Shown: positions 24,311 to 33,671 of the stretch, one piece after another
How the letters are laid out: the number at the start of each line of letters is the position of its first letter
Numbering within the stretch: position 1 is the stretch's first letter
Sequence record: KT895374.1
DNA: 64,000 nucleotides
Direction: 5' to 3' (one strand)
Program-made: the position numbers and the translations under genes
The notes under the pieces: model-generated
What the model was told of the DNA's origin: nothing
The model's database searches: none
The model's input: the letters and a program-made list of their open reading frames with translations, nothing else

Positions 24311-26863
24311 TTAATCTTTAATAATATAATAAACCTTTTCATAATCTTTATCAGAAACTGATGCTGACACGTCTAATTTATATTCAGATTCATTTTCAGT
24401 ACTATCTATTTCAACTTTAAAATTAGTTATATCAGGTTTATGATTGTTTTCTAATTTAAAAGGTATTCCATTTATACTAGGATAATAAGAAACTAATTGT
24501 TCTTCTTCTGTAAAAACTCTTAATCTGAAAAAGTAATCACCGTTATCATAATCATTGAAATCAATTTCTTCCATTAATTCTTTATATTCAGTCTGATTAG
24601 ATATTGTAAAAACCTTCCCTAGTCCATCAAGGTCTCCACTATTATTTAGAATTTCAGCTTGAATATTTATTGGTGAACTTGATAGGTTTCTAATTAACCA
24701 ATAGAATTCATTGTAATCTCTGTATAGATTTTGAATATCAAACATATATACTCTTTCTATAATTGAATTTATTTCATTACCCTCATCAATACACTCTATA
24801 AATAAATCAATATATGCTTTTCTTATATCATCTTTAGGATATTTTTGATAGGTTTCTAATTTTAAAGGAGTTTCTACATATTCTTTTGATTCTTCAATAA
24901 TATTTCCCTTACTATCTGTTACAGAGTAAGTGACCATATCATCTTCATTATCTTCAATGATGCCATTATAATTTATAACAGTTTCATCATCTTCATTAGT
25001 TTCAATTCCAATTGAATTTGTAGTTATTATTGGTTTAGTATTTTCTATAGTTGTAAATTTGATTCCCTCTTCATTTGGATAGTATTGAATCAAATCTTCC
25101 TCTTCTGATATTATTCGAATTCTATAATAATATTCCCCCTGTTTTAATTTAGGTCGTATTCTATCTTTTATTTCAACTGGTCTTAACGTTTCTCCAGTTC
25201 TATTTTCATTTCCTAAATAAACAGTATTTATCTCAATTTCTTCTTCAGTGTTTCCTTCTTCATCAGTAACTGAAACAAGATTATGTTCTAATATCTCTAA
25301 CTGTGTAATTAGTTCAAATCTAGAAAAATTATCTAATTTCCAGCTAAAAATATGTCCTAATCTTTCACGCAATGAAGATATAATAAAAGAGTTAGCTCTA
25401 ACTGCAAGAGTAGCTTCTCCACCCTTATCATCTATTACATAAATTACAATATTTGATCCTGAAGCATCAACAGTATATTCTTCTTTTAAGTTTAAATTAT
25501 AAGGGGTTTCTATATAATCTCTTGCTTCTCTAATTATTGTTCCTTCTTCATCTAAAACTGTAAAAAGAATATGATCATTTTCAGGATCAGTAATATCTGC
25601 GTTTAAGATTAAAAATCTTGTATCATCTAAATCTCTCATAAGATACGCTTCATTTAATGTAATGATTGGATTTAGATGAGGATATCTTGTGAATTGTATA
25701 CCTTCCTCGTTTGGATAATAGGTAGACCAATTATCTTCTTCACTCCATACTTTTAGACGAAACTTGTAATAATTCTTTTGAATAGCAAACTCTTCAGCGT
25801 CTTCTATATTAATAAAATTATATGAACCTCTATATTGATTTACTTCTCCAACCTTAACTATTTGATTATAAAAATCTAATACCTCTGGTTGCATAGATAT
25901 ATTTCTATTAGATCTATTTTTAAATTTCCATACAAAATGATCTCGGACTCTACGAAGATTATCAATTGAAAATAAGTCTACCTGATAGGAGTGACTATTA
26001 TTTCCATATATTTCATCAAAGACATTAACTGTAATAATTAACTTACTAGTATTAAAGAAAGTTTTAGGATATTCATACTCAAAAAAATCAATTCGTGGTG
26101 TGTAATCAAAATTAATCATCTCTTTTAATGTATTACCTAGATTATCTTTAATATTGTATTTTACTCTATCTTCTTCTTCATCACTAATAATTACCTTACC
26201 AGTTAATTTAAAAGTGCTTTTTTCTTCTAATAAAACAATATCTTTTAATCTTACTCTTGGATTTTCATTATTCCTTACAATAAATTTTATACCTGAATCG
26301 TCAGGATAATATCTATTCCAGTTTTCATCCTTACTATAATATCGAATTCGATAATAGTATTCGCCTTCCTCTAAATCTTTTAAGTTAATAGATGATCTAT
26401 AATTTGATGTACCTTTTTTATTAGAATCCATTCGGTATTCTAAACTATTAGTCATAAGTTCTTTTTCTTTGTTGACTATTTCAACCATTGTATAAATTGA
26501 ATAAGGAGAAAAGTTTTTAACTTTCCAAGAAAATTCATCCAATTTAGTTCTCTCTAGATTATAAATATCATATAGGTTAAAATCTTTTCTTATAGTATTA
26601 ATAGATCCTAAATCATTTTCAGCTTCAATAGTAATATAACTATTTGAGTTTTTAAACTTAACGTCTTCTAAAAAAATAACTTTAGATATTTTAATAGGTG
26701 ATAGTTTATACTCTTCTATTTGATCTATAATTTTACCATCTTCATTTTTAATTTTATACTTAATATTATTGCCATTATCATCCTCGATAATGGCAATAAC
26801 TCTTAGCTGAAGTCTATTTTTAGAATCCGAATCAACAGTTACAGATTGAATATTTAATTCCAT
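24311..26863 (-). CDS. virion structural protein with four ~200-aa beta-rich repeats (850 aa)
   Basis: Repeated F.WK.KN.S...EI...Y..RI...YYP...GI.F...P.I...I.D.E.D.V.Y. Confidence 0.65.
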   Translation of the reverse strand: MELNIQSVTVDSDSKNRLQLRVIAIIEDDNGNNIKYKIKNEDGKIIDQIEEYKLSPIKISKVIFLEDVKFKNSNSYITIEAENDLGSINTIRKDFNLYDIYNLERTKLDEFSWKVKNFSPYSIYTMVEIVNKEKELMTNSLEYRMDSNKKGTSNYRSSINLKDLEEGEYYYRIRYYSKDENWNRYYPDDSGIKFIVRNNENPRVRLKDIVLLEEKSTFKLTGKVIISDEEEDRVKYNIKDNLGNTLKEMINFDYTPRIDFFEYEYPKTFFNTSKLIITVNVFDEIYGNNSHSYQVDLFSIDNLRRVRDHFVWKFKNRSNRNISMQPEVLDFYNQIVKVGEVNQYRGSYNFINIEDAEEFAIQKNYYKFRLKVWSEEDNWSTYYPNEEGIQFTRYPHLNPIITLNEAYLMRDLDDTRFLILNADITDPENDHILFTVLDEEGTIIREARDYIETPYNLNLKEEYTVDASGSNIVIYVIDDKGGEATLAVRANSFIISSLRERLGHIFSWKLDNFSRFELITQLEILEHNLVSVTDEEGNTEEEIEINTVYLGNENRTGETLRPVEIKDRIRPKLKQGEYYYRIRIISEEEDLIQYYPNEEGIKFTTIENTKPIITTNSIGIETNEDDETVINYNGIIEDNEDDMVTYSVTDSKGNIIEESKEYVETPLKLETYQKYPKDDIRKAYIDLFIECIDEGNEINSIIERVYMFDIQNLYRDYNEFYWLIRNLSSSPINIQAEILNNSGDLDGLGKVFTISNQTEYKELMEEIDFNDYDNGDYFFRLRVFTEEEQLVSYYPSINGIPFKLENNHKPDITNFKVEIDSTENESEYKLDVSASVSDKDYEKVYYIIKD

Positions 26864-26875
26864 CTAAAACAACAC

Positions 26876-27820
26876 CTATCTTAATAATTTACTAAATTCA
26901 GTATAAACATCAGCAATATATTTCCCAGCTACACTTTCAATAATATAATCTTTTGAAATTCCACCGTTTACTACTGAACCGAAAATAACAGAATAGAATG
27001 ATGCTAAATTATCAACCGCTAATAATGAACTCTCCCCATACATTCTAACCCAGTCATTGATAAACACTCTAACCGTTAAATCTCTCATACCTTTTAAATC
27101 TTTTATATTTTCAAAGAATTTAAAAATATCATCATAAGCATTATCATCCAGTTTACTTTCTTCTTCTTTGATTAGTTTTAGTGGGGATTTATTAAAACAT
27201 GCATAGTATGCAATATTATCAACTGTTTCACTATCTATTTTACCACACATATTGATTAAGAAAAATTTAGCCAGTAGGAACGATACTAGATCAGCTCTAA
27301 ATGGTTCAATACTTGTTGCAAATAGTTTGTCTAAGATTTTACCATTCATTTTTGCATAAACTATAGCACTATTTCTAATGATATTGATATTATTAGTGAA
27401 TCTATTCCAATTATTAGCAAGTTCTAATTGAATCATTCCATTTTGCATAAGATTAAATAATAATTTTGGATAAATATCAAATACTTCAGTACCTTTTGGC
27501 TTTTTTGCAAAGTCATTCAGGTTAATCACTGAAACCATTTGACCTTTATATTGCATTCCAAAAGTTGACAAATATTTAGGTATTTCAATGGTTGGATTCC
27601 AGATAGGTATGATTTTACCATTATTAAAATGCTGAAGAGTTTTACCTTTTCCACCAAAATTAATTCTTCTAGATATAATATTTAAAGCTTCATCTAGTTC
27701 ATTTGATTTTACAGCATCCCGATCAATGTTAACTGCATTAATATTTTTAACTACTTTTGGATTTGATATAGCTTGTTTAAAAATAGCACTGTCTCTTATT
27801 GTTTTCAAAATACTAGCCAC
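26876..27820 (-). CDS. hypothetical protein heading the late structural operon (314 aa)
   Basis: GTG start; AACA-N6-TA motif at 27838..27849. Confidence 0.65.
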   Translation of the reverse strand: MASILKTIRDSAIFKQAISNPKVVKNINAVNIDRDAVKSNELDEALNIISRRINFGGKGKTLQHFNNGKIIPIWNPTIEIPKYLSTFGMQYKGQMVSVINLNDFAKKPKGTEVFDIYPKLLFNLMQNGMIQLELANNWNRFTNNINIIRNSAIVYAKMNGKILDKLFATSIEPFRADLVSFLLAKFFLINMCGKIDSETVDNIAYYACFNKSPLKLIKEEESKLDDNAYDDIFKFFENIKDLKGMRDLTVRVFINDWVRMYGESSLLAVDNLASFYSVIFGSVVNGGISKDYIIESVAGKYIADVYTEFSKLLR

Positions 27821-27837
27821 CTTTTTATTTACTATTA

Positions 27838-27849
27838 TATTTAGTTGTT
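27838..27849 (-). promoter_or_regulatory. late-type promoter AACA-N6-TA heading the structural operon
   Basis: Minus strand AACA-ACTAAA-TA just upstream of the RBS. Confidence 0.55.
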
Positions 27850-27890
27850 TTGAAAGAGGGTTAATATATAAAATGAAAAAAAAAAAAAAA

Positions 27891-27918
27891 ATAGGATTTA
27901 GTAATTACTAAATCCTAT
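27891..27918. terminator. 28-bp perfect palindrome, probable terminator
   Basis: ATAGGATTTAGTAATTACTAAATCCTAT next to an A-tract. Confidence 0.65.
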
Positions 27919-27962
27919 CGAAGATATTATTATTAATAGTTATATTTAAAGATATTATTTAT

Positions 27963-28148
27963 TTAATCTTCAATTAAGACAGATGCAAGTACAACATCTT
28001 GAAGAATAAAATTCTGACCGTCATCACCTTCAACCGCACATAGACCATCATGAATATCTCTAATTGTACCATTAATAATAAATCTTCTAAAACCTCTTGT
28101 AACTTCAAATTTAACTTTCTGATCAACTTCTAATTTCATTTGTCTCAT
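27963..28148 (-). CDS. small beta-barrel (SH3/KOW-like) protein (61 aa)
   Basis: Alternating beta pattern KVKFEV...INGTIRDI...CAVEGDDG; GGGAGAGG RBS; fold is inference. Confidence 0.6.
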   Translation of the reverse strand: MRQMKLEVDQKVKFEVTRGFRRFIINGTIRDIHDGLCAVEGDDGQNFILQDVVLASVLIED

Positions 28149-28233
28149 AACATAGCCCTCTCCCTATTGGTATATAATAAATTTAACGTGGTTTTTGTTT
28201 TCTTTTTCTAATAAGCATTTTCTTATTTCTAGT

Positions 28234-28448
28234 GCATCTGCTAATTCTTAGTAGTAGGTTTAATTTCCTGATCTCTCTAGTAATCAACACAGCTTTTGTC
28301 TCCTTTACCAACAATATTAATAAAAATTTAACTGTAAGACAGTTAAAGGTGATTATAATTTACTTAGCATCTTGTTTACCGCTAAACAAGACGTTCCATA
28401 CCGTTACCGTTTTTTCTCTATCATTCTATACGATAACGCTAGCAACGC
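28234..28448 (-). ncRNA. candidate structured non-coding RNA (~215 nt)
   Basis: Promoter-like TATATTAA-N6-G puts +1 at 28448; the 5' end GCGUUGCUAG pairs with the 3' end UUAGCA(G)AUGC; internal 11-bp and 9-bp hairpins; no credible minus-strand ORF. Confidence 0.45.
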
Positions 28449-28518
28449 CTATTTTTAATATAATCTACCATTTAAAGATTATTGAAAGGACTATTATAGG
28501 TATTTATAGCGCATCTAA

Positions 28519-29229
28519 TTATTTTACTTTTAATAAAGATTGAGTCATAAATTTACCTAAGTCTTCATCTTTTATTCCGCTATTACTATTAATATATCTT
28601 GAGATACGCTCAATAGCATTTGAGAAAGGAATTTTCTTCATATTATAAGTAAATCCTTTTTCAAAATTATATGAATGAGAAAAGTTATGAAGGTCTCTAG
28701 TGTCTAAACTAATTAGATAGAAATCACCATCGATTAATCTAATAGAAAATTTAGGTACTGAGTCGCTTTCATTAATCATCTCACGAGTAAATACAATTTC
28801 TTTACCATCTTTTAAAATCTGAATATAATCAAAGAATGTTTTACTTCTTTCAATATTATTCCAGAAACTTTCTTTTTCTGCTCTAATAATTCTTTCTTTC
28901 GTTAAGTTTGCATGATCTTTTCTTTCTTTCAAGATAACATTCTTTCCCATAATCTCTAAAAACTTAGGGTCATTAAGAGAACTTCTTCCGAAGTCCTCCA
29001 GACCTAAAGCCGCACCAAATGTCTTAACTGGAATAGACATTGGTTTTTGCAGATTATTAGGAAAGATAGAAATAATATCTTGATCAATACTATCAGTTTC
29101 TCTTTGATAAACATAATAAGCTTCACTATAGTTTAGCTCACTAACAAATCTGAAGAAAGCGATATTTTTCTCTCTGTATGCTTCATCAATTTTAGTTTCA
29201 TCAAATTCGAATCTCTCAGTTTTAATCAT
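28519..29229 (-). CDS. hypothetical protein (236 aa)
   Basis: Long ORF with AAGGGT RBS. Confidence 0.7.
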   Translation of the reverse strand: MIKTERFEFDETKIDEAYREKNIAFFRFVSELNYSEAYYVYQRETDSIDQDIISIFPNNLQKPMSIPVKTFGAALGLEDFGRSSLNDPKFLEIMGKNVILKERKDHANLTKERIIRAEKESFWNNIERSKTFFDYIQILKDGKEIVFTREMINESDSVPKFSIRLIDGDFYLISLDTRDLHNFSHSYNFEKGFTYNMKKIPFSNAIERISRYINSNSGIKDEDLGKFMTQSLLKVK

Positions 29230-29268
29230 AATAAGTTTCTACCCTTCTATTTTTAATTTAGTTAATAA

Positions 29269-29772
29269 CTATTTTTTATTCTTAGTTGTTGATGATTTTT
29301 TTACATTAGATTTTGATTTTGTCTCTTTATTATCTGATTTTGATTCTTCTTTCTTTTCTTCAGTTTTTTCATTTTCTTTCTTTTGATCTTTTGTATCAGA
29401 TTTATCTTCAGACTTTTCTTTATTTAATTTTTCATCAACTTTTTTCTGTACTTCTTCTTGTTGCTCTTGAATTTCTTCTTCAACTTCTTCAGGTTCTAAA
29501 CCATCTAGTTCATTTTCAATTTCCTCCTTAGTAGATTTAACTAAGTCAGATTCTTCTTCAAAATCTCTTTCAGAAAATTCTACGGCTTCATCAATAGTTT
29601 CTTCAATTTCCTCTTCTGAAAGTTCTTCTTTGCTAGGCTTTAATTTTTCTTTAAGGTTTTTAACTTTCTCTTTACCTTTCTGTGCTAATTCAGTTTCCTT
29701 AAATTTATCATAAGCCTTTTTAGTTCCGATTCCGATAATAATTCCTGCACCTAAGATAGCTGATTTTTTCAT
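29269..29772 (-). CDS. membrane-anchored acidic, low-complexity protein (167 aa)
   Basis: N-terminal AILGAGIIIGIG segment, then an E/K-rich tail. Confidence 0.7.
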   Translation of the reverse strand: MKKSAILGAGIIIGIGTKKAYDKFKETELAQKGKEKVKNLKEKLKPSKEELSEEEIEETIDEAVEFSERDFEEESDLVKSTKEEIENELDGLEPEEVEEEIQEQQEEVQKKVDEKLNKEKSEDKSDTKDQKKENEKTEEKKEESKSDNKETKSKSNVKKSSTTKNKK

Positions 29773-29827
29773 TATATTTTCCCCATTTCATGTTTTTTAG
29801 TAGTATTGTTAATTTAATTATTAGAAG

Positions 29828-29938
29828 TTATTTAACAAATTTTCTAAGTAATTCACGAGTTACAACGCCAGCAGTAGTTCCAATTGCAGTTTTGATAAAT
29901 ACTTCTTTAGTTAAATTGAAAAATCTTTTTTTGCTCAT
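29828..29938 (-). CDS. cationic amphipathic peptide 4 (36 aa), not in the ORF track
   Basis: MSKKRFFNLTKEVFIKTAIGTTAGVVTRELLRKFVK; GGGGGAG RBS. Confidence 0.75.
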   Translation of the reverse strand: MSKKRFFNLTKEVFIKTAIGTTAGVVTRELLRKFVK

Positions 29939-29962
29939 TTCAATCTCCCCCTTAAATTTTAT

Positions 29963-30085
29963 TTAATTATCTAGATCTACAAACTTTTTAAGTAATTTAT
30001 CAGTAACTACTGAAGCCGTTCCTTGTACAGCAGTATAAATGGTTATAATTTTTAATGCATTTTTAAAGGCTTTTCTCTTACTCAT
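29963..30085 (-). CDS. cationic amphipathic peptide 3 (40 aa), not in the ORF track
   Basis: MSKRKAFKNALKIITIYTAVQGTASVVTDKLLKKFVDLDN; AGGAG RBS. Confidence 0.75.
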   Translation of the reverse strand: MSKRKAFKNALKIITIYTAVQGTASVVTDKLLKKFVDLDN

Positions 30086-30097
30086 TCCTATCAACTC

Positions 30098-30208
30098 CTA
30101 TTTAATTTCTTTAACAGCAGCGTCTGTTAGTTTGCTAGCCGCATATTGAATTGATAATGAAACTGCTAAAACTTTAATAATTTTGATTGCTGTTTTTCTC
30201 TTACTCAT
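30098..30208 (-). CDS. cationic amphipathic peptide 2 (36 aa), not in the ORF track
   Basis: MSKRKTAIKIIKVLAVSLSIQYAASKLTDAAVKEIK; GGGGG RBS. Confidence 0.75.
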   Translation of the reverse strand: MSKRKTAIKIIKVLAVSLSIQYAASKLTDAAVKEIK

Positions 30209-30237
30209 TTTTAATCCCCCCAATAAAATATTTTAAA

Positions 30238-30339
30238 TTATTTATTTTTAAAGCATCTTTCTAGATATTTTCCAACTAATATTTGACAAGATATTGCGGC
30301 TGTCATAGACAAGGTAAACTTAATAAGATCTTTTTTCAT
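30238..30339 (-). CDS. cationic amphipathic peptide 1 (33 aa), not in the ORF track
   Basis: MKKDLIKFTLSMTAAISCQILVGKYLERCFKNK; GGAGGG RBS inside the end of the upstream gene. Confidence 0.7.
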   Translation of the reverse strand: MKKDLIKFTLSMTAAISCQILVGKYLERCFKNK

Positions 30340-30340
30340 T

Positions 30341-30685
30341 TTAATTCCCTCCAATTTCAATAAATTCTAGAAGAGTATTGAGTTCTTCAGCTAATTCTTT
30401 TCTATTAAATTCATCTGATTCATCATTATATTCAATGATTACCTTTTGATCAGTAATATTAAAATAGAGAGTATCATTATTATTCATTATGTGAAATGAA
30501 GAACTTCTTACATTACTTTTGACGAGATGTGTTATTTTTTTAAGTTCTTCTATTTCAAATTCTCCTATTACGTTAGAATTTTTTACCATAACAATTTTTT
30601 CATCCTTAATACCTATACCATAATCATTGCTGTCGAAATAAGCTAATTTAAATAACGAGCAAAGTTTAATCCTAATATCTCTCAT
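30341..30685 (-). CDS. hypothetical protein (114 aa)
   Basis: AGAGGA RBS; first gene after the leftward early-type promoter. Confidence 0.7.
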   Translation of the reverse strand: MRDIRIKLCSLFKLAYFDSNDYGIGIKDEKIVMVKNSNVIGEFEIEELKKITHLVKSNVRSSSFHIMNNNDTLYFNITDQKVIIEYNDESDEFNRKELAEELNTLLEFIEIGGN

Positions 30686-30774
30686 ATTTTTTCCTCTTTT
30701 CTACTTTTTATTTTTGTGAATGGATCATAGAAATTTCCTTAATTCTATAATGTTTTTATTCTTCTTTCACTATT

Positions 30775-30851
30775 ATAATATATATTTATTCGAATTTTTT
30801 GATACGGTTAGCAAATTTTAACTTATTTTTTAAAGCTATATTATTAAAATG
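30775..30851. promoter_or_regulatory. divergent pair of phage early-type promoters at the strand switch
   Basis: TATATTAT-N6-G on the minus strand at 30775..30782 and on the plus strand at 30837..30844. Confidence 0.7.
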
Positions 30852-30878
30852 TAAAAGAAAATTTGGAGGAGATATTAG

Positions 30879-31334
30879 ATGTACAAAAAAATTAAGGTTG
30901 GATTTTTAATGATTTTAGCAAGTCTTCTATTAATTTTATCGGGATGTGACTTATTATTTGGAAAAAGTAAGGAGAGAACAAGTGCTGATGAAGATGCTGT
31001 AAGATTAGAAAACGAGGTAAGTAAAGTTAGTGGGAAGGTAAAAAGTTCTGAAAATGAAAAAATTAATGAAAAAGTAAAATATAATATTATATATTTTGAA
31101 TATTTAAATAATAGTCAAGAAGCTTATCCAAGTCTAGATATTGGTTATATTGACATAAATGGAGAAAGAAAAAGTAAAATTTTTGAAAATTATCAAGAAA
31201 AAATTATTGAAGGTAAAAAACCTTATTTAATTGTAGAAAATGATAAAGCTTTTATTTATAGACCACCTTATATTAGTTATATTCAAGATGATACGGATGG
31301 AAAGATAATTAATAAGAAAGAGAATGATGAATAA
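30879..31334 (+). CDS. putative lipoprotein
   Basis: Signal peptide with lipobox LLLILSGC. Confidence 0.75.
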   Translation: MYKKIKVGFLMILASLLLILSGCDLLFGKSKERTSADEDAVRLENEVSKVSGKVKSSENEKINEKVKYNIIYFEYLNNSQEAYPSLDIGYIDINGERKSKIFENYQEKIIEGKKPYLIVENDKAFIYRPPYISYIQDDTDGKIINKKENDE

Positions 31335-31831
31335 TGTTTATAAAAAGAGTGATTGTATTAATTTCGTTAATCCTAGTATTATTATTTATTAATAATATTG
31401 AAGAACTATCAGCTTCTACAGGAACTGCAGTTAGAGCAAGTATCTCAGCTTCAACAAATGTAACAAATAGAACTCCTATCAATACATTAGCTAGAAATAG
31501 CTATATAGGGTCATCAAGTAGTTATGCTAACAGATCTATTGGTTTATACAACTATAATATAAATATTATTAATAGTACCTATAATAGCTATTTACCATAT
31601 TGGATAATCTTTGATAGTGTAAATCTAAATAATTCACAAAAGAGCTTTTTAAAAGATAATAAAAAATTTATTAATGATATAAAAAATAATAAAGGTAAGT
31701 ATTGGATACTAATTAAAGAAACTAATGGATCTAAAAAAGCAGTATCCGTAGATAAAGAGCAATATAACCAACTTAATATAGGAGATAATATACATATTAA
31801 GAATGGTCTATTAAAAATAAAAAATAAGTAG
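31334..31831 (+). CDS. secreted or membrane-anchored protein
   Basis: N-terminal hydrophobic helix; C-terminal VSVDKEQYNQLNIGDNI beta-barrel-like segment. Confidence 0.65.
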   Translation: MFIKRVIVLISLILVLLFINNIEELSASTGTAVRASISASTNVTNRTPINTLARNSYIGSSSSYANRSIGLYNYNINIINSTYNSYLPYWIIFDSVNLNNSQKSFLKDNKKFINDIKNNKGKYWILIKETNGSKKAVSVDKEQYNQLNIGDNIHIKNGLLKIKNK

Positions 31832-31845
31832 TAAACTTTGAAAGA

Positions 31846-32181
31846 ATGGGGAAAAAGAAAATGAGAAAATTTGATTTTGAAAAAGCAAGCATTATTATTA
31901 AAGAGGAAATTAACAAAGGATTACTATTAGTTACTGCAGGATTAGAAGATAATGATGATTCTTGGGCGACCATCTACAGAGATGGTCGTTTTTGGAATCC
32001 TAAAGATCGTTTAGACATTTATCAGGGAATTTTTGCAGTAGAAGACAATAGTGATGTACCAGTTATGAACTTACGCTATAGAGATGGAAAAATAAAAACT
32101 TTAGAAATGTATATTGAAAGTGATGAAGAAATTAAAAAAGAAGATTATAAAATGGTAGACAACTGGGAGAGTTTAAATTAG
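31846..32181 (+). CDS. hypothetical protein (111 aa)
   Basis: ORF in an operon. Confidence 0.7.
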   Translation: MGKKKMRKFDFEKASIIIKEEINKGLLLVTAGLEDNDDSWATIYRDGRFWNPKDRLDIYQGIFAVEDNSDVPVMNLRYRDGKIKTLEMYIESDEEIKKEDYKMVDNWESLN

Positions 32182-32252
32182 GGATTAAATATTAGGTGAG
32201 CATTATCACTCACCTAATATTTTTATATTATTATAGAGGGGTGTTAAAAATA

Positions 32253-32957
32253 ATGGATACTATTTATTACAGGGTATGTCTTTTAAGAGATCATCCAGAG
32301 CTTAATTTTTTGGAAGTCTATAACTGTTCAGAATTATGCGGCAGGTTTACTATACATGAAAAAACTTTTTGGTCTAGTTTCTTTGGAGATCAACCTCGAT
32401 TGTCTGTATCCATGGCAGGAGCACAAGTGAGGCTTAATTTCTCATCACCTGTTTCAAGTAGAGAAAGTGATTGCATAGAATTCGTTAATCATCTAACTGA
32501 TTTAGAACCAATCGAAAAAGAGAAACCAAAGAAATCCTTATTAAATTTCTTTGGATTGGGTAAAAAAGTCCAACAAAAAAATAAGCAATTAGAAAAAAAT
32601 CCTAGAAGATACTATAATTTTTACAACACAGACTATTCAAAAGAGGTACTTGATCTTATTGTCCTTACAAAAACACTAAGAGATGATTATCCTGAAATAT
32701 TTGCAACCTTTTCAAAATCAATAGAATATACAATAGAAAGTTTATTAACATTGGCAAAAAATGACTATGCTCATAGAGATTTTAATCATAGTCTCAAAAA
32801 TGGTATATCATTAATTAAAGAGTATTATAAACTTGCTGTGGTAGCAAAAGAGAAAGCGGATTCCGAAACGAAAAAAATAGTTGAAGCGAGTATAAAACTT
32901 CACAATCAAGCTATAGAAGAACTTACATCAGGCATGAAACGAATTAATGATTTATAA
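32253..32957 (+). CDS. hypothetical protein, paralogue of 374..1108
   Basis: Start moved to ATG 32253 (GAGGGGTG RBS, promoter at 32224..32231); shared C-terminal half. Confidence 0.75.
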   Translation: MDTIYYRVCLLRDHPELNFLEVYNCSELCGRFTIHEKTFWSSFFGDQPRLSVSMAGAQVRLNFSSPVSSRESDCIEFVNHLTDLEPIEKEKPKKSLLNFFGLGKKVQQKNKQLEKNPRRYYNFYNTDYSKEVLDLIVLTKTLRDDYPEIFATFSKSIEYTIESLLTLAKNDYAHRDFNHSLKNGISLIKEYYKLAVVAKEKADSETKKIVEASIKLHNQAIEELTSGMKRINDL

Positions 32958-33069
32958 TTTTCTTTATCAAAGAGTTTTTTATGATTGAGTGGAAAAGAGT
33001 ATAGTACTAATTTTACCCACTATTGATGATTTCTACTCAATCATATATTATGGGAGGTTAATTTTTTTG

Positions 33070-33471
33070 ATGGAATTTTTAAATATATTTATTATTCTAA
33101 CTATTGCATTTCCAATAGCTATACTTATAAACATGAATATTAATAGAAAATTGAGAGTTTATGAAAGATATTATCTCTTCTTTATTATATTCACTTTATT
33201 ATTTTTATTTTTCCCCACATTATGGATAAACGTGCTTTTTAATGAGTCAACATATTATCAGTTGATTTTAATAGCTATGATATTCTGTAGCATATTTGTA
33301 TTTGATGGTATAATTAAACAAATGAATTATGACTTTAAAAATAATAAGAAAAAATTTGAAAAGAAATATAAAACTTATTTCGCAAAAATGATTATGGTTG
33401 CTACTGTTACTGTCTTTGGAATAGTTCTCGTATTTGCAAGTATTGTAATAATTTTTATTAAAAATTGTTAA
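33070..33471 (+). CDS. multi-pass membrane protein
   Basis: About four hydrophobic helices; start moved to ATG 33070 on the GGGAGG RBS. Confidence 0.7.
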   Translation: MEFLNIFIILTIAFPIAILINMNINRKLRVYERYYLFFIIFTLLFLFFPTLWINVLFNESTYYQLILIAMIFCSIFVFDGIIKQMNYDFKNNKKKFEKKYKTYFAKMIMVATVTVFGIVLVFASIVIIFIKNC

Positions 33472-33671
33472 GAGGGTGCTGGGGATTGGTTTTATTTAAT
33501 TTATTATGGTTTTTAATCATAGGTTTTATTTTTACTTATATTTCTACTTTTTTAATTAGTGATATCATTAAATTAGAAAATCGGAATATGGCTTTATTAA
33601 ACCTTGTCATTTTAATTCTTTATACTGGATATTTTTCTTATGCTATAAATAAACTATCAAGTATTTCATAA
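33465..33671 (+). CDS. small two-TM membrane protein
   Basis: Two hydrophobic segments. Confidence 0.6.
   Translation: MLRGCWGLVLFNLLWFLIIGFIFTYISTFLISDIIKLENRNMALLNLVILILYTGYFSYAINKLSSIS

Follow-up and report, generated by a model that had tools for sequence, protein, structure and literature searches.

We describe here an array of four very small genes, gp035, gp034, gp033 and gp032, in a stretch of 64,000 nucleotides (nt) of record KT895374.1 (the window in what follows). The record is the genome of Bacillus phage vB_BpuM-BpSp (BpSp), a jumbo myovirus of 255.6 kb whose host is Bacillus pumilus and which is assigned to Takahashivirus together with PBS1 and AR9. Over 3 kb around the array, the window and BpSp agree at 100% identity and in their coordinates. 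An original prediction on this DNA had pointed out four tandem unannotated open reading frames (ORFs) of 33, 36, 40 and 36 residues, each with a strong ribosome-binding site (RBS). The ORFs and their RBSs are confirmed here: all four are ATG ORFs on the minus strand (Table 1), and 6-9 nt upstream of each there is a Shine-Dalgarno (SD) sequence rich in G (GGAGGG, GGGGGG, AGGAG or GGGGGAG) that is conspicuous in AT-rich DNA (about 22-35% GC in the window and 25.9% in the whole genome). They are not unannotated, as GenBank KT895374 already lists gp032-gp035, all as hypothetical protein. The gaps between consecutive genes from gp036, the gene preceding the array, to gp032 are 1, 29, 12 and 24 nt in this order, and the SD of gp035 lies in the final codons of gp036. 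Among the 460 ATG ORFs of 30-45 residues present on both strands of the whole 255.6-kb genome, 12 have a correctly placed match to at least five of the six positions of AGGAGG. Three of those 12 are array members, the SD of the remaining member being GGGGGG. The GC contents at the first, second and third codon positions (GC1/GC2/GC3) are 0.34/0.33/0.17, the same pattern as in gp027-gp036. On these sequence features, gp032-gp035 are very likely real genes. It can also be seen that gp034, gp033 and gp032 share a single reading frame (29828-30208, minus strand), in which they are separated by single stop codons plus 4 and 8 codons that hold the SD of the next gene, and that the duplication units in this stretch are 123 and 147 nt long, both multiples of three. 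The possibility that these three are one broken gene was dropped, since every ORF has its own SD and ATG.

The four genes are related to different degrees. When compared with shuffled sequences, the alignment of gp033 with gp032 (53% identity) had a z of 12.5 and that of gp034 with gp033 a z of 8.7, while gp035 was marginal against gp032 (z = 3.7, p = 0.006) and scored 45 bits against the family profile. By these scores, gp034, gp033 and gp032 are clear paralogues and gp035, the most divergent one, is marginal. Residual DNA repeats spaced at 123-144 nt span the RBS-plus-start and the C-terminal coding parts, and gp032 and gp033 retain 73% DNA identity over 41 nt, which indicates an old tandem duplication of a unit formed by an RBS and its ORF. 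The ratios of non-synonymous to synonymous changes (dN/dS, Nei-Gojobori) were 0.26 for gp033/gp032, 0.49 for gp034/gp033 and about 1 for gp034/gp032, and these values are rough because dS is saturated (1.4-1.7). When the ORFs of at least 20 residues in the six frames of the whole 255.6-kb genome were searched with a hidden Markov model, no further paralogues came to light, the next match having an expect value (E) of 0.17. The third-best non-self match to the profile (E 0.19, not significant) was an unannotated tiny ORF at about 249320-249400 of the genome (plus strand), between gp310 and gp311, with an MSKRR start followed by a strongly hydrophobic stretch. A family of this kind could consist of non-functional or decaying duplicates, that is, of small ORFs persisting by chance or translated without purpose, and its presence in one genome only, the marginal relationship of gp035 and the gp034/gp032 dN/dS would all fit. 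However, the ATG starts, the correctly spaced strong SDs and the open frames are all intact despite pairwise identities of 23-53%, GC3 is depressed as in real genes, adjacent paralogues show dN/dS below 0.5, and a charged-uncharged-charged layout is kept in four of the four products. We regard decay as decidedly improbable.

Similarity searches did not connect the array with any known family. Pfam, PHROG and NCBIfam (E <= 1-5) yielded nothing usable for the four peptides, for the neighbouring gp031 and gp036 or for AR9 g288, the counterpart of gp031. As had been suggested, each peptide was also compared by tblastn (E <= 10) with phage sequences, in this case 50,697 records, and the matches were to the peptides themselves plus one chance match at E = 6. 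A profile of the four peptides was run against 5.8e9 proteins and, exhaustively, against 1.84e9 cluster representatives, where it recovered the four themselves and spurious repeats only; the non-self matches were long repetitive proteins, judged spurious, one of them resembling a translated array of clustered regularly interspaced short palindromic repeats (CRISPR). Against PDB sequences, the profile had zero matches at E <= 10. Queries of 33-40 residues detect fairly close relatives only: in the phage-wide tblastn, the gp033 query did not retrieve gp032, a paralogue with which it shares 53% identity, while a second site in the BpSp record was matched with gp032 as the query. With queries this short, orphan means here that there is no detectable relative. 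For closer relatives of the phage itself, gp030 and an alignment of gp028 searched against IMG/VR, JGI metagenomes and GTDB genomes retrieved AR9 alone, and so did gp030 against the set of 5.8e9 proteins. The AR9 sequence between g289 and g288 contained nothing like the four peptides. Judged from these comparisons, the lineage of BpSp has the array as an addition of its own.

The array had also been placed downstream of a leftward early-type promoter, and this proved right. The early promoter consensus of AR9, obtained by differential RNA sequencing, is AAATATATATTAT-(6N)-G(+1) and is used by the injected virion RNA polymerase (PMC5312081). An exact match to it lies 83 nt 5' of the gp036 start codon, oriented with the operon genes, and is identical to the annotated early promoter of AR9 g292. 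In the window, early-consensus matches with at most one mismatch numbered 10, as compared with 0.98 expected. At the other end, the hairpin just past gp029 was the sole terminator-like site found by a simple scan of 26800-31400, and an AR9-type late promoter motif follows it. From the early promoter, the single terminator-like site and the late motif, we infer an eight-gene early operon running gp036-gp035-gp034-gp033-gp032-gp031-gp030-gp029. In AR9, the syntenic genes g292-g287, including g288, are early or pre-early by RNA sequencing (PMC5312081). A scan for sigma-70-type promoters was uninformative because it found fewer sites than in shuffled sequences, and Rfam at a permissive threshold gave zero matches on either strand of 27800-31000. 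The AR9 operon g292-g283 resembles that of BpSp in its identical promoter element and spacing (AAATATATATTAT-N6-G), in adjoining the virion-protein genes g281 and g280, which are matched by BpSp gp028 and gp027, and in carrying g288, g287 and g283, which correspond to gp031, gp030 and gp029. It differs in its first genes, g292 (membrane protein) and g289 (lipoprotein), and in the lack of small-peptide genes between g289 and g288.

Table 1. Genes and regulatory features of the putative early operon of BpSp, in the direction of transcription (positions are those of the window)
Feature	Position	Strand	Description
AR9-type early promoter, AAATATATATTAT-N6-G	30768..30787	-	Exact consensus match; predicted start G at 30768
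gp036	30341..30685	-	114 residues; first gene of the operon, orphan; stop 1 nt before gp035 start
gp035	30238..30339	-	33 residues, ATG; net charge +5; two Cys; uncharged run of 16 residues; most divergent paralogue
gp034	30098..30208	-	36 residues, ATG; net charge +6; N-terminus MSKRK
gp033	29963..30085	-	40 residues, ATG; net charge +5; N-terminus MSKRK; predicted single helix, residues 2-39
gp032	29828..29938	-	36 residues, ATG; net charge +7; N-terminus MSKKR; GxxxG within core
gp031	29269..29772	-	167 residues; short Gly/Ile-rich N-terminal segment, long acidic/Lys-rich tail; counterpart of AR9 g288
gp030	28519..29229	-	236 residues; 27% identity to AR9 g287; synteny anchor
gp029	27963..28148	-	61 residues; last gene of the operon; weak counterpart of AR9 g283
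Intrinsic-terminator-like hairpin	27890..27919	-	13-bp stem followed by a T10 run, just past gp029
AR9-type late promoter motif, AACA-N6-TA	27838..27849	-	Directly 5' of virion-protein gene gp028; early-unit boundary

Some further features of this transcription unit were observed. On the opposite strand, at 30832-30851 (plus strand), there is an AR9 early promoter with two mismatches (AAAGCTATATTAT-N6-G) that faces rightward to gp037, and the 193-nt intergenic region may thus carry two early promoters in divergent orientation. A 13-mer, ATTTCTATGATCC, located at 30722-30734 (minus strand) in BpSp, is common to the leader of gp036 and that of AR9 g292, which are diverged in all other respects. 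In both phages this 13-mer contains a mini-ORF of 3-6 codons, and elsewhere in the window its occurrence is not above chance. Between gp030 and gp029, 370 nt (28149-28518) are without annotated gene, the counterpart space in AR9 being occupied by g286-g284, and a late-promoter-like AACA-N6-TA is found inside this gene-free stretch (28365-28376, minus strand).

The predicted products are of 3.8-4.5 kDa, with isoelectric points of 9.7-11.2, net charges of +5 to +7 and 44-50% hydrophobic residues, and none of them contains Pro, Trp or His. Their N-termini are MKK, MSKRK, MSKRK and MSKKR, and they are cationic with Lys/Arg-rich starts, as originally described. The centre had been called Ala/Gly/Thr/Val-rich, which is true for Ala, Thr and Val (3.4, 1.9 and 1.7 times the genome average; Lys is also enriched 1.7 times) but not for Gly (0.7 times). 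The charge is at the ends, and the uncharged runs of 16, 13, 16 and 11 residues exceed those of shuffled sequences (p 0.005-0.08 per peptide), this charged-uncharged-charged layout being common to the four peptides. Small-xxx-small motifs are more frequent than expected (17 versus 9.6 +/- 2.3, p 0.003), and the conserved positions are spaced roughly i/i+3/i+4. For gp033, AlphaFold2 predicted an uninterrupted helix over residues 2-39 (mean predicted local distance difference test, pLDDT, of 84) from an alignment of four sequences. We considered signalling pre-peptides of the Phr or arbitrium type and rejected them: the peptides have no adequate hydrophobic signal-peptide core and no receptor gene is adjacent.

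On the basis of these data, our preferred reading, which we hold as possible rather than probable, is that gp032-gp035 encode early intracellular host-takeover or exclusion peptides that act at the membrane from inside. Tandem duplication, in the BpSp lineage only, would have generated four paralogous genes whose products combine a basic N-terminus, an uncharged Ala/Thr/Val/Ile core of 11-16 residues with small-xxx-small motifs, and a basic C-terminus. Within the gp036 to gp029 operon, the injected virion RNA polymerase would transcribe them together in the first minutes of infection, and each peptide would be translated from its own strong RBS. Having neither a signal peptide nor an exporter, the peptides should remain in the cytoplasm, where the Lys/Arg ends would attach to the inner, anionic side of the Bacillus membrane and the small-residue cores would pack helix to helix, either among themselves or against membrane proteins of the host. 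The outcome would be a disturbance of envelope functions, for example division, wall synthesis, membrane potential or the entry of further phages. Since the island in which the array is located also encodes lipoprotein-like, secreted and multi-transmembrane (TM) products, membrane action is a reasonable guess. A comparable small early membrane protein that arrests the host is gp56 of Bacillus phage SPO1. Another precedent is Gp11 of the Staphylococcus phage PhiNM1, a 53-residue membrane protein, made early, that targets MurG and DivIC and thereby blocks division (PMC11237401). Gp11 is early, very small, directed to a Gram-positive host and active at the membrane from inside, which by analogy is the mode we deem likeliest for the BpSp peptides. 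In contrast with them, it has two clear TM helices and a proven membrane location, whereas the BpSp peptides are shorter, have one weakly hydrophobic core and occur as four paralogues. There is no sequence similarity between Gp11 and the peptides.

Several results weigh against this preferred reading. On the scale of Hessa et al. 2005, with approximate values, the best 19-residue windows of the peptides had insertion energies of +4.4 to +8.2 kcal/mol, while the signal or TM segments of gp037, gp038, gp041, gp042 and gp160 had values of -0.5 to -3.3. The stretch described originally as hydrophobic is a run of 11-16 uncharged residues for which insertion is unfavourable. By this estimate the cores are neither long nor apolar enough for a classical TM helix or a translocon-type insertion, and for this reason the role of membrane anchors, also proposed, seems weak. 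The term amphipathic was not borne out either: in comparison with composition-matched shuffles, the hydrophobic moment had z of 0.1-1.9 for the whole helix and of at most 0.7 for 18-residue windows, and only the 11-residue windows of gp033 and gp035 reached p 0.02. The combination of unfavourable insertion energy and an amphipathicity not clearly above chance means that neither of the classic modes of membrane binding is clearly encoded. In addition, the helix predicted for gp033 is that of a very short peptide and is based on a four-sequence alignment, and the excess of small-xxx-small motifs is in part a restatement of the clustering of small residues in the core. To these points have to be added the saturated dS values mentioned above and the facts that the family is known from a single genome and that no homologue supports any function. 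Altogether, the earlier interpretation is partly supported.

Because neither membrane-insertion signature is clear, we find it nearly as likely that the peptides are soluble helical binders of protein or nucleic acid. They would then be basic helices off the membrane that bind and inhibit a protein of the host or the phage (for instance, an enzyme of defence or housekeeping), attach to nucleic acid, or assemble with their own kind or with one another into coiled coils. The unfavourable insertion energies, the non-significant amphipathicity and the very high positive charge are in line with this explanation, as would be the long uninterrupted helix predicted for gp033, and the i/i+3/i+4 conservation and small-xxx-small enrichment are those found in helix-helix packing. 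Moreover, early phage operons are typically rich in small protein inhibitors. On the other hand, a conserved MSK(R/K)(K/R) start ahead of an uncharged core is how N-termini targeted to the membrane are usually built in Firmicutes, close to half of the residues (44-50%) are hydrophobic, the neighbouring genes are envelope-directed, and no nucleic-acid-binding or inhibitor family was matched in the Pfam, PHROG, NCBIfam and PDB searches. Taken by themselves, soluble helices seem to us somewhat unlikely.

The peptides can also be compared with other small membrane-active proteins. Type I toxins such as TisB, and viroporins, are small pore-forming helices with polar or charged stripes. As in the putative BpSp helices, the length is about 30-40 residues, and a single helix with basic flanks has a Thr/Ser/Gln core that could line an oligomeric pore, several copies being needed. 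The toxins, however, have far more hydrophobic cores and an antisense-RNA antitoxin, whereas no Rfam or antisense feature was found in BpSp 27800-31000, and membrane insertion is not predicted for the BpSp peptides. A speculative extension is that the four paralogues co-assemble through their small-xxx-small cores and, within minutes, form a hetero-oligomeric viroporin-like leak in the cytoplasmic membrane, a rapid, partial collapse of the proton-motive force halting the flagella and thereby excluding like phages. PBS1-type phages attach to rotating flagella. We consider this leak a long shot; if true, it would be a previously undescribed mechanism of exclusion by a multi-peptide phage channel. 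The peptides differ from single-pass membrane proteins in their short uncharged runs (11-16 residues) and unfavourable insertion energy, and from holins, which are late and encoded beside the endolysin, in that their operon is early and without endolysin. With cationic alpha-helical antimicrobial peptides, among them the disruptin-type lysis peptides of phages, the BpSp peptides have in common the length, a net charge between +5 and +7, a share of hydrophobic residues of about 45-50% and a predicted helix, but the amphipathicity that defines those peptides is not clearly above chance in BpSp. Moreover, the disruptin-type peptides are late lysis-cassette genes of Gram-negative phages, and the BpSp array is early.

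The original prediction had also drawn a parallel with leaderless bacteriocins. Multi-peptide members of this class (aureocin A70, garvicin KS, cereucins V/X/H) consist of cationic peptides of about 30-34 residues that undergo no processing and are encoded by three or four genes in tandem, in clusters that also carry genes for an ATP-binding cassette (ABC) transporter, for immunity and, in most cases, for a regulator. By this explanation, the four BpSp peptides would be released and jointly kill competing Gram-positive cells. Four adjacent genes for leaderless cationic peptides of 33-40 residues with net charges of +5 to +7 do recall aureocin A70, garvicin KS and the cereucins in number and size, and release by phage lysis could make a transporter dispensable. 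Nevertheless, the Pfam, NCBIfam, PHROG, PDB and large-set searches revealed no similarity to any bacteriocin family, and the composition is different (no Trp, Gly-poor). The other genes of the operon (gp036, gp031, gp030 and gp029) include no ABC transporter, immunity or regulator gene, and none is named in the 318-feature annotation, read as annotated. Whereas the bacteriocin genes are located in bacterial plasmids or chromosomes, the array belongs to a phage early operon and would be expressed from an immediate-early promoter in a cell about to die. Of three family traits that could be assessed, two (homology and cluster content) were lacking, and a bacteriocin seems to us very improbable.

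The position of the array directly upstream of gp031, in the same operon, raises the question of whether the peptides are related to this gene. They could be partners that assemble with gp031, or be virion-associated, in which case small basic peptides, kept inside the particle or ejected from it, could neutralise DNA or aid entry. In support of this, Gp31 was reported in the BpSp virion proteome, alongside Gp25 and Gp28 of the same region (PMC4870245, Table 2). Peptides of 3.8-4.5 kDa would run off the 15% sodium dodecyl sulphate gel of that study (PMC4870245), and their absence from the proteome is thus uninformative. However, the Gp31 entry is internally odd, as it lists 4 peptides identified yet 4.2% coverage (PMC4870245, Table 2). 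This coverage equals about 7 of 167 residues, at odds with 4 peptides, which weakens a structural role of gp031. Besides, the operon has an early promoter and there is no late motif before gp031, which matches AR9 g288 in BLASTP with E 4e-14 (composition correction off). The RNA profile of g288 is early, g288 has no virion-protein annotation and AR9 carries it without any peptide array. Lastly, the start of gp031 had been described as similar to the peptides, and this resemblance turned out to be compositional (z <= 1.3), the gp031 N-terminus not being homologous to them. Derivation of the array from the 5' end of gp031 was likewise discarded, the alignment scores being equal to those of shuffled sequences. 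We judge a partnership with gp031 or a place in the virion improbable.

As for the remaining neighbours, gp036 had no homologues in 5.8e9 proteins, and AlphaFold2, run on its sequence alone, gave a model of low confidence (pLDDT 51). Comparison at the syntenic regions only, as for AR9, showed that in Listeria phage LPJP1 and Staphylococcus phage Machias the gp028 homologue directly abuts a divergent helicase operon and the gp029-gp042 island is wholly absent. The absence of the island from LPJP1 and Machias and of the array from AR9 places the array in a lineage-variable early island. The divergent early genes of this island (30879-33671, plus strand) encode a lipoprotein-like product with an LSGC lipobox (gp037), a product with an N-terminal signal or TM segment (gp038) and the multi-TM gp041 and gp042, and in AR9 the lipoprotein gene g289 sits in the corresponding leftward operon. 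These divergent, apparently envelope-directed genes are candidates for superinfection exclusion. Adjoining the virion-protein genes, gp027 (24311-26863, minus strand, 850 residues) gave two alignments to AR9 g280, the second with a shift of about 400 residues, and may thus contain an internal duplication. Elsewhere in the genome, two other small genes were noticed: gp160 (119983-120096, plus strand), with a strong RBS, for a convincing 37-residue single-TM peptide, and gp262 (203723-203818, plus strand), for a Lys/Asn-rich peptide of 31 residues and net charge +10.

The array is an orphan example of a familiar class of phage genes, that of small early host-directed peptides. Jumbo phages of the AR9/PBS1 group have many tiny early genes of unassigned role, and annotation frequently overlooks or disregards small proteins. 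In BpSp, four paralogous peptide genes are confidently assigned to a unit of the injected virion RNA polymerase, within a variable island enriched in envelope products. Being synthesisable, these peptides of 33-40 residues are concrete and cheap targets for uncovering new means by which phages incapacitate or protect Gram-positive cells. If inactive, they would represent another orphan duplication. Should they prove to act on the membrane or to block an envelope enzyme that is essential, the short list of leads obtained from phages against Bacillus and related bacteria would become longer.

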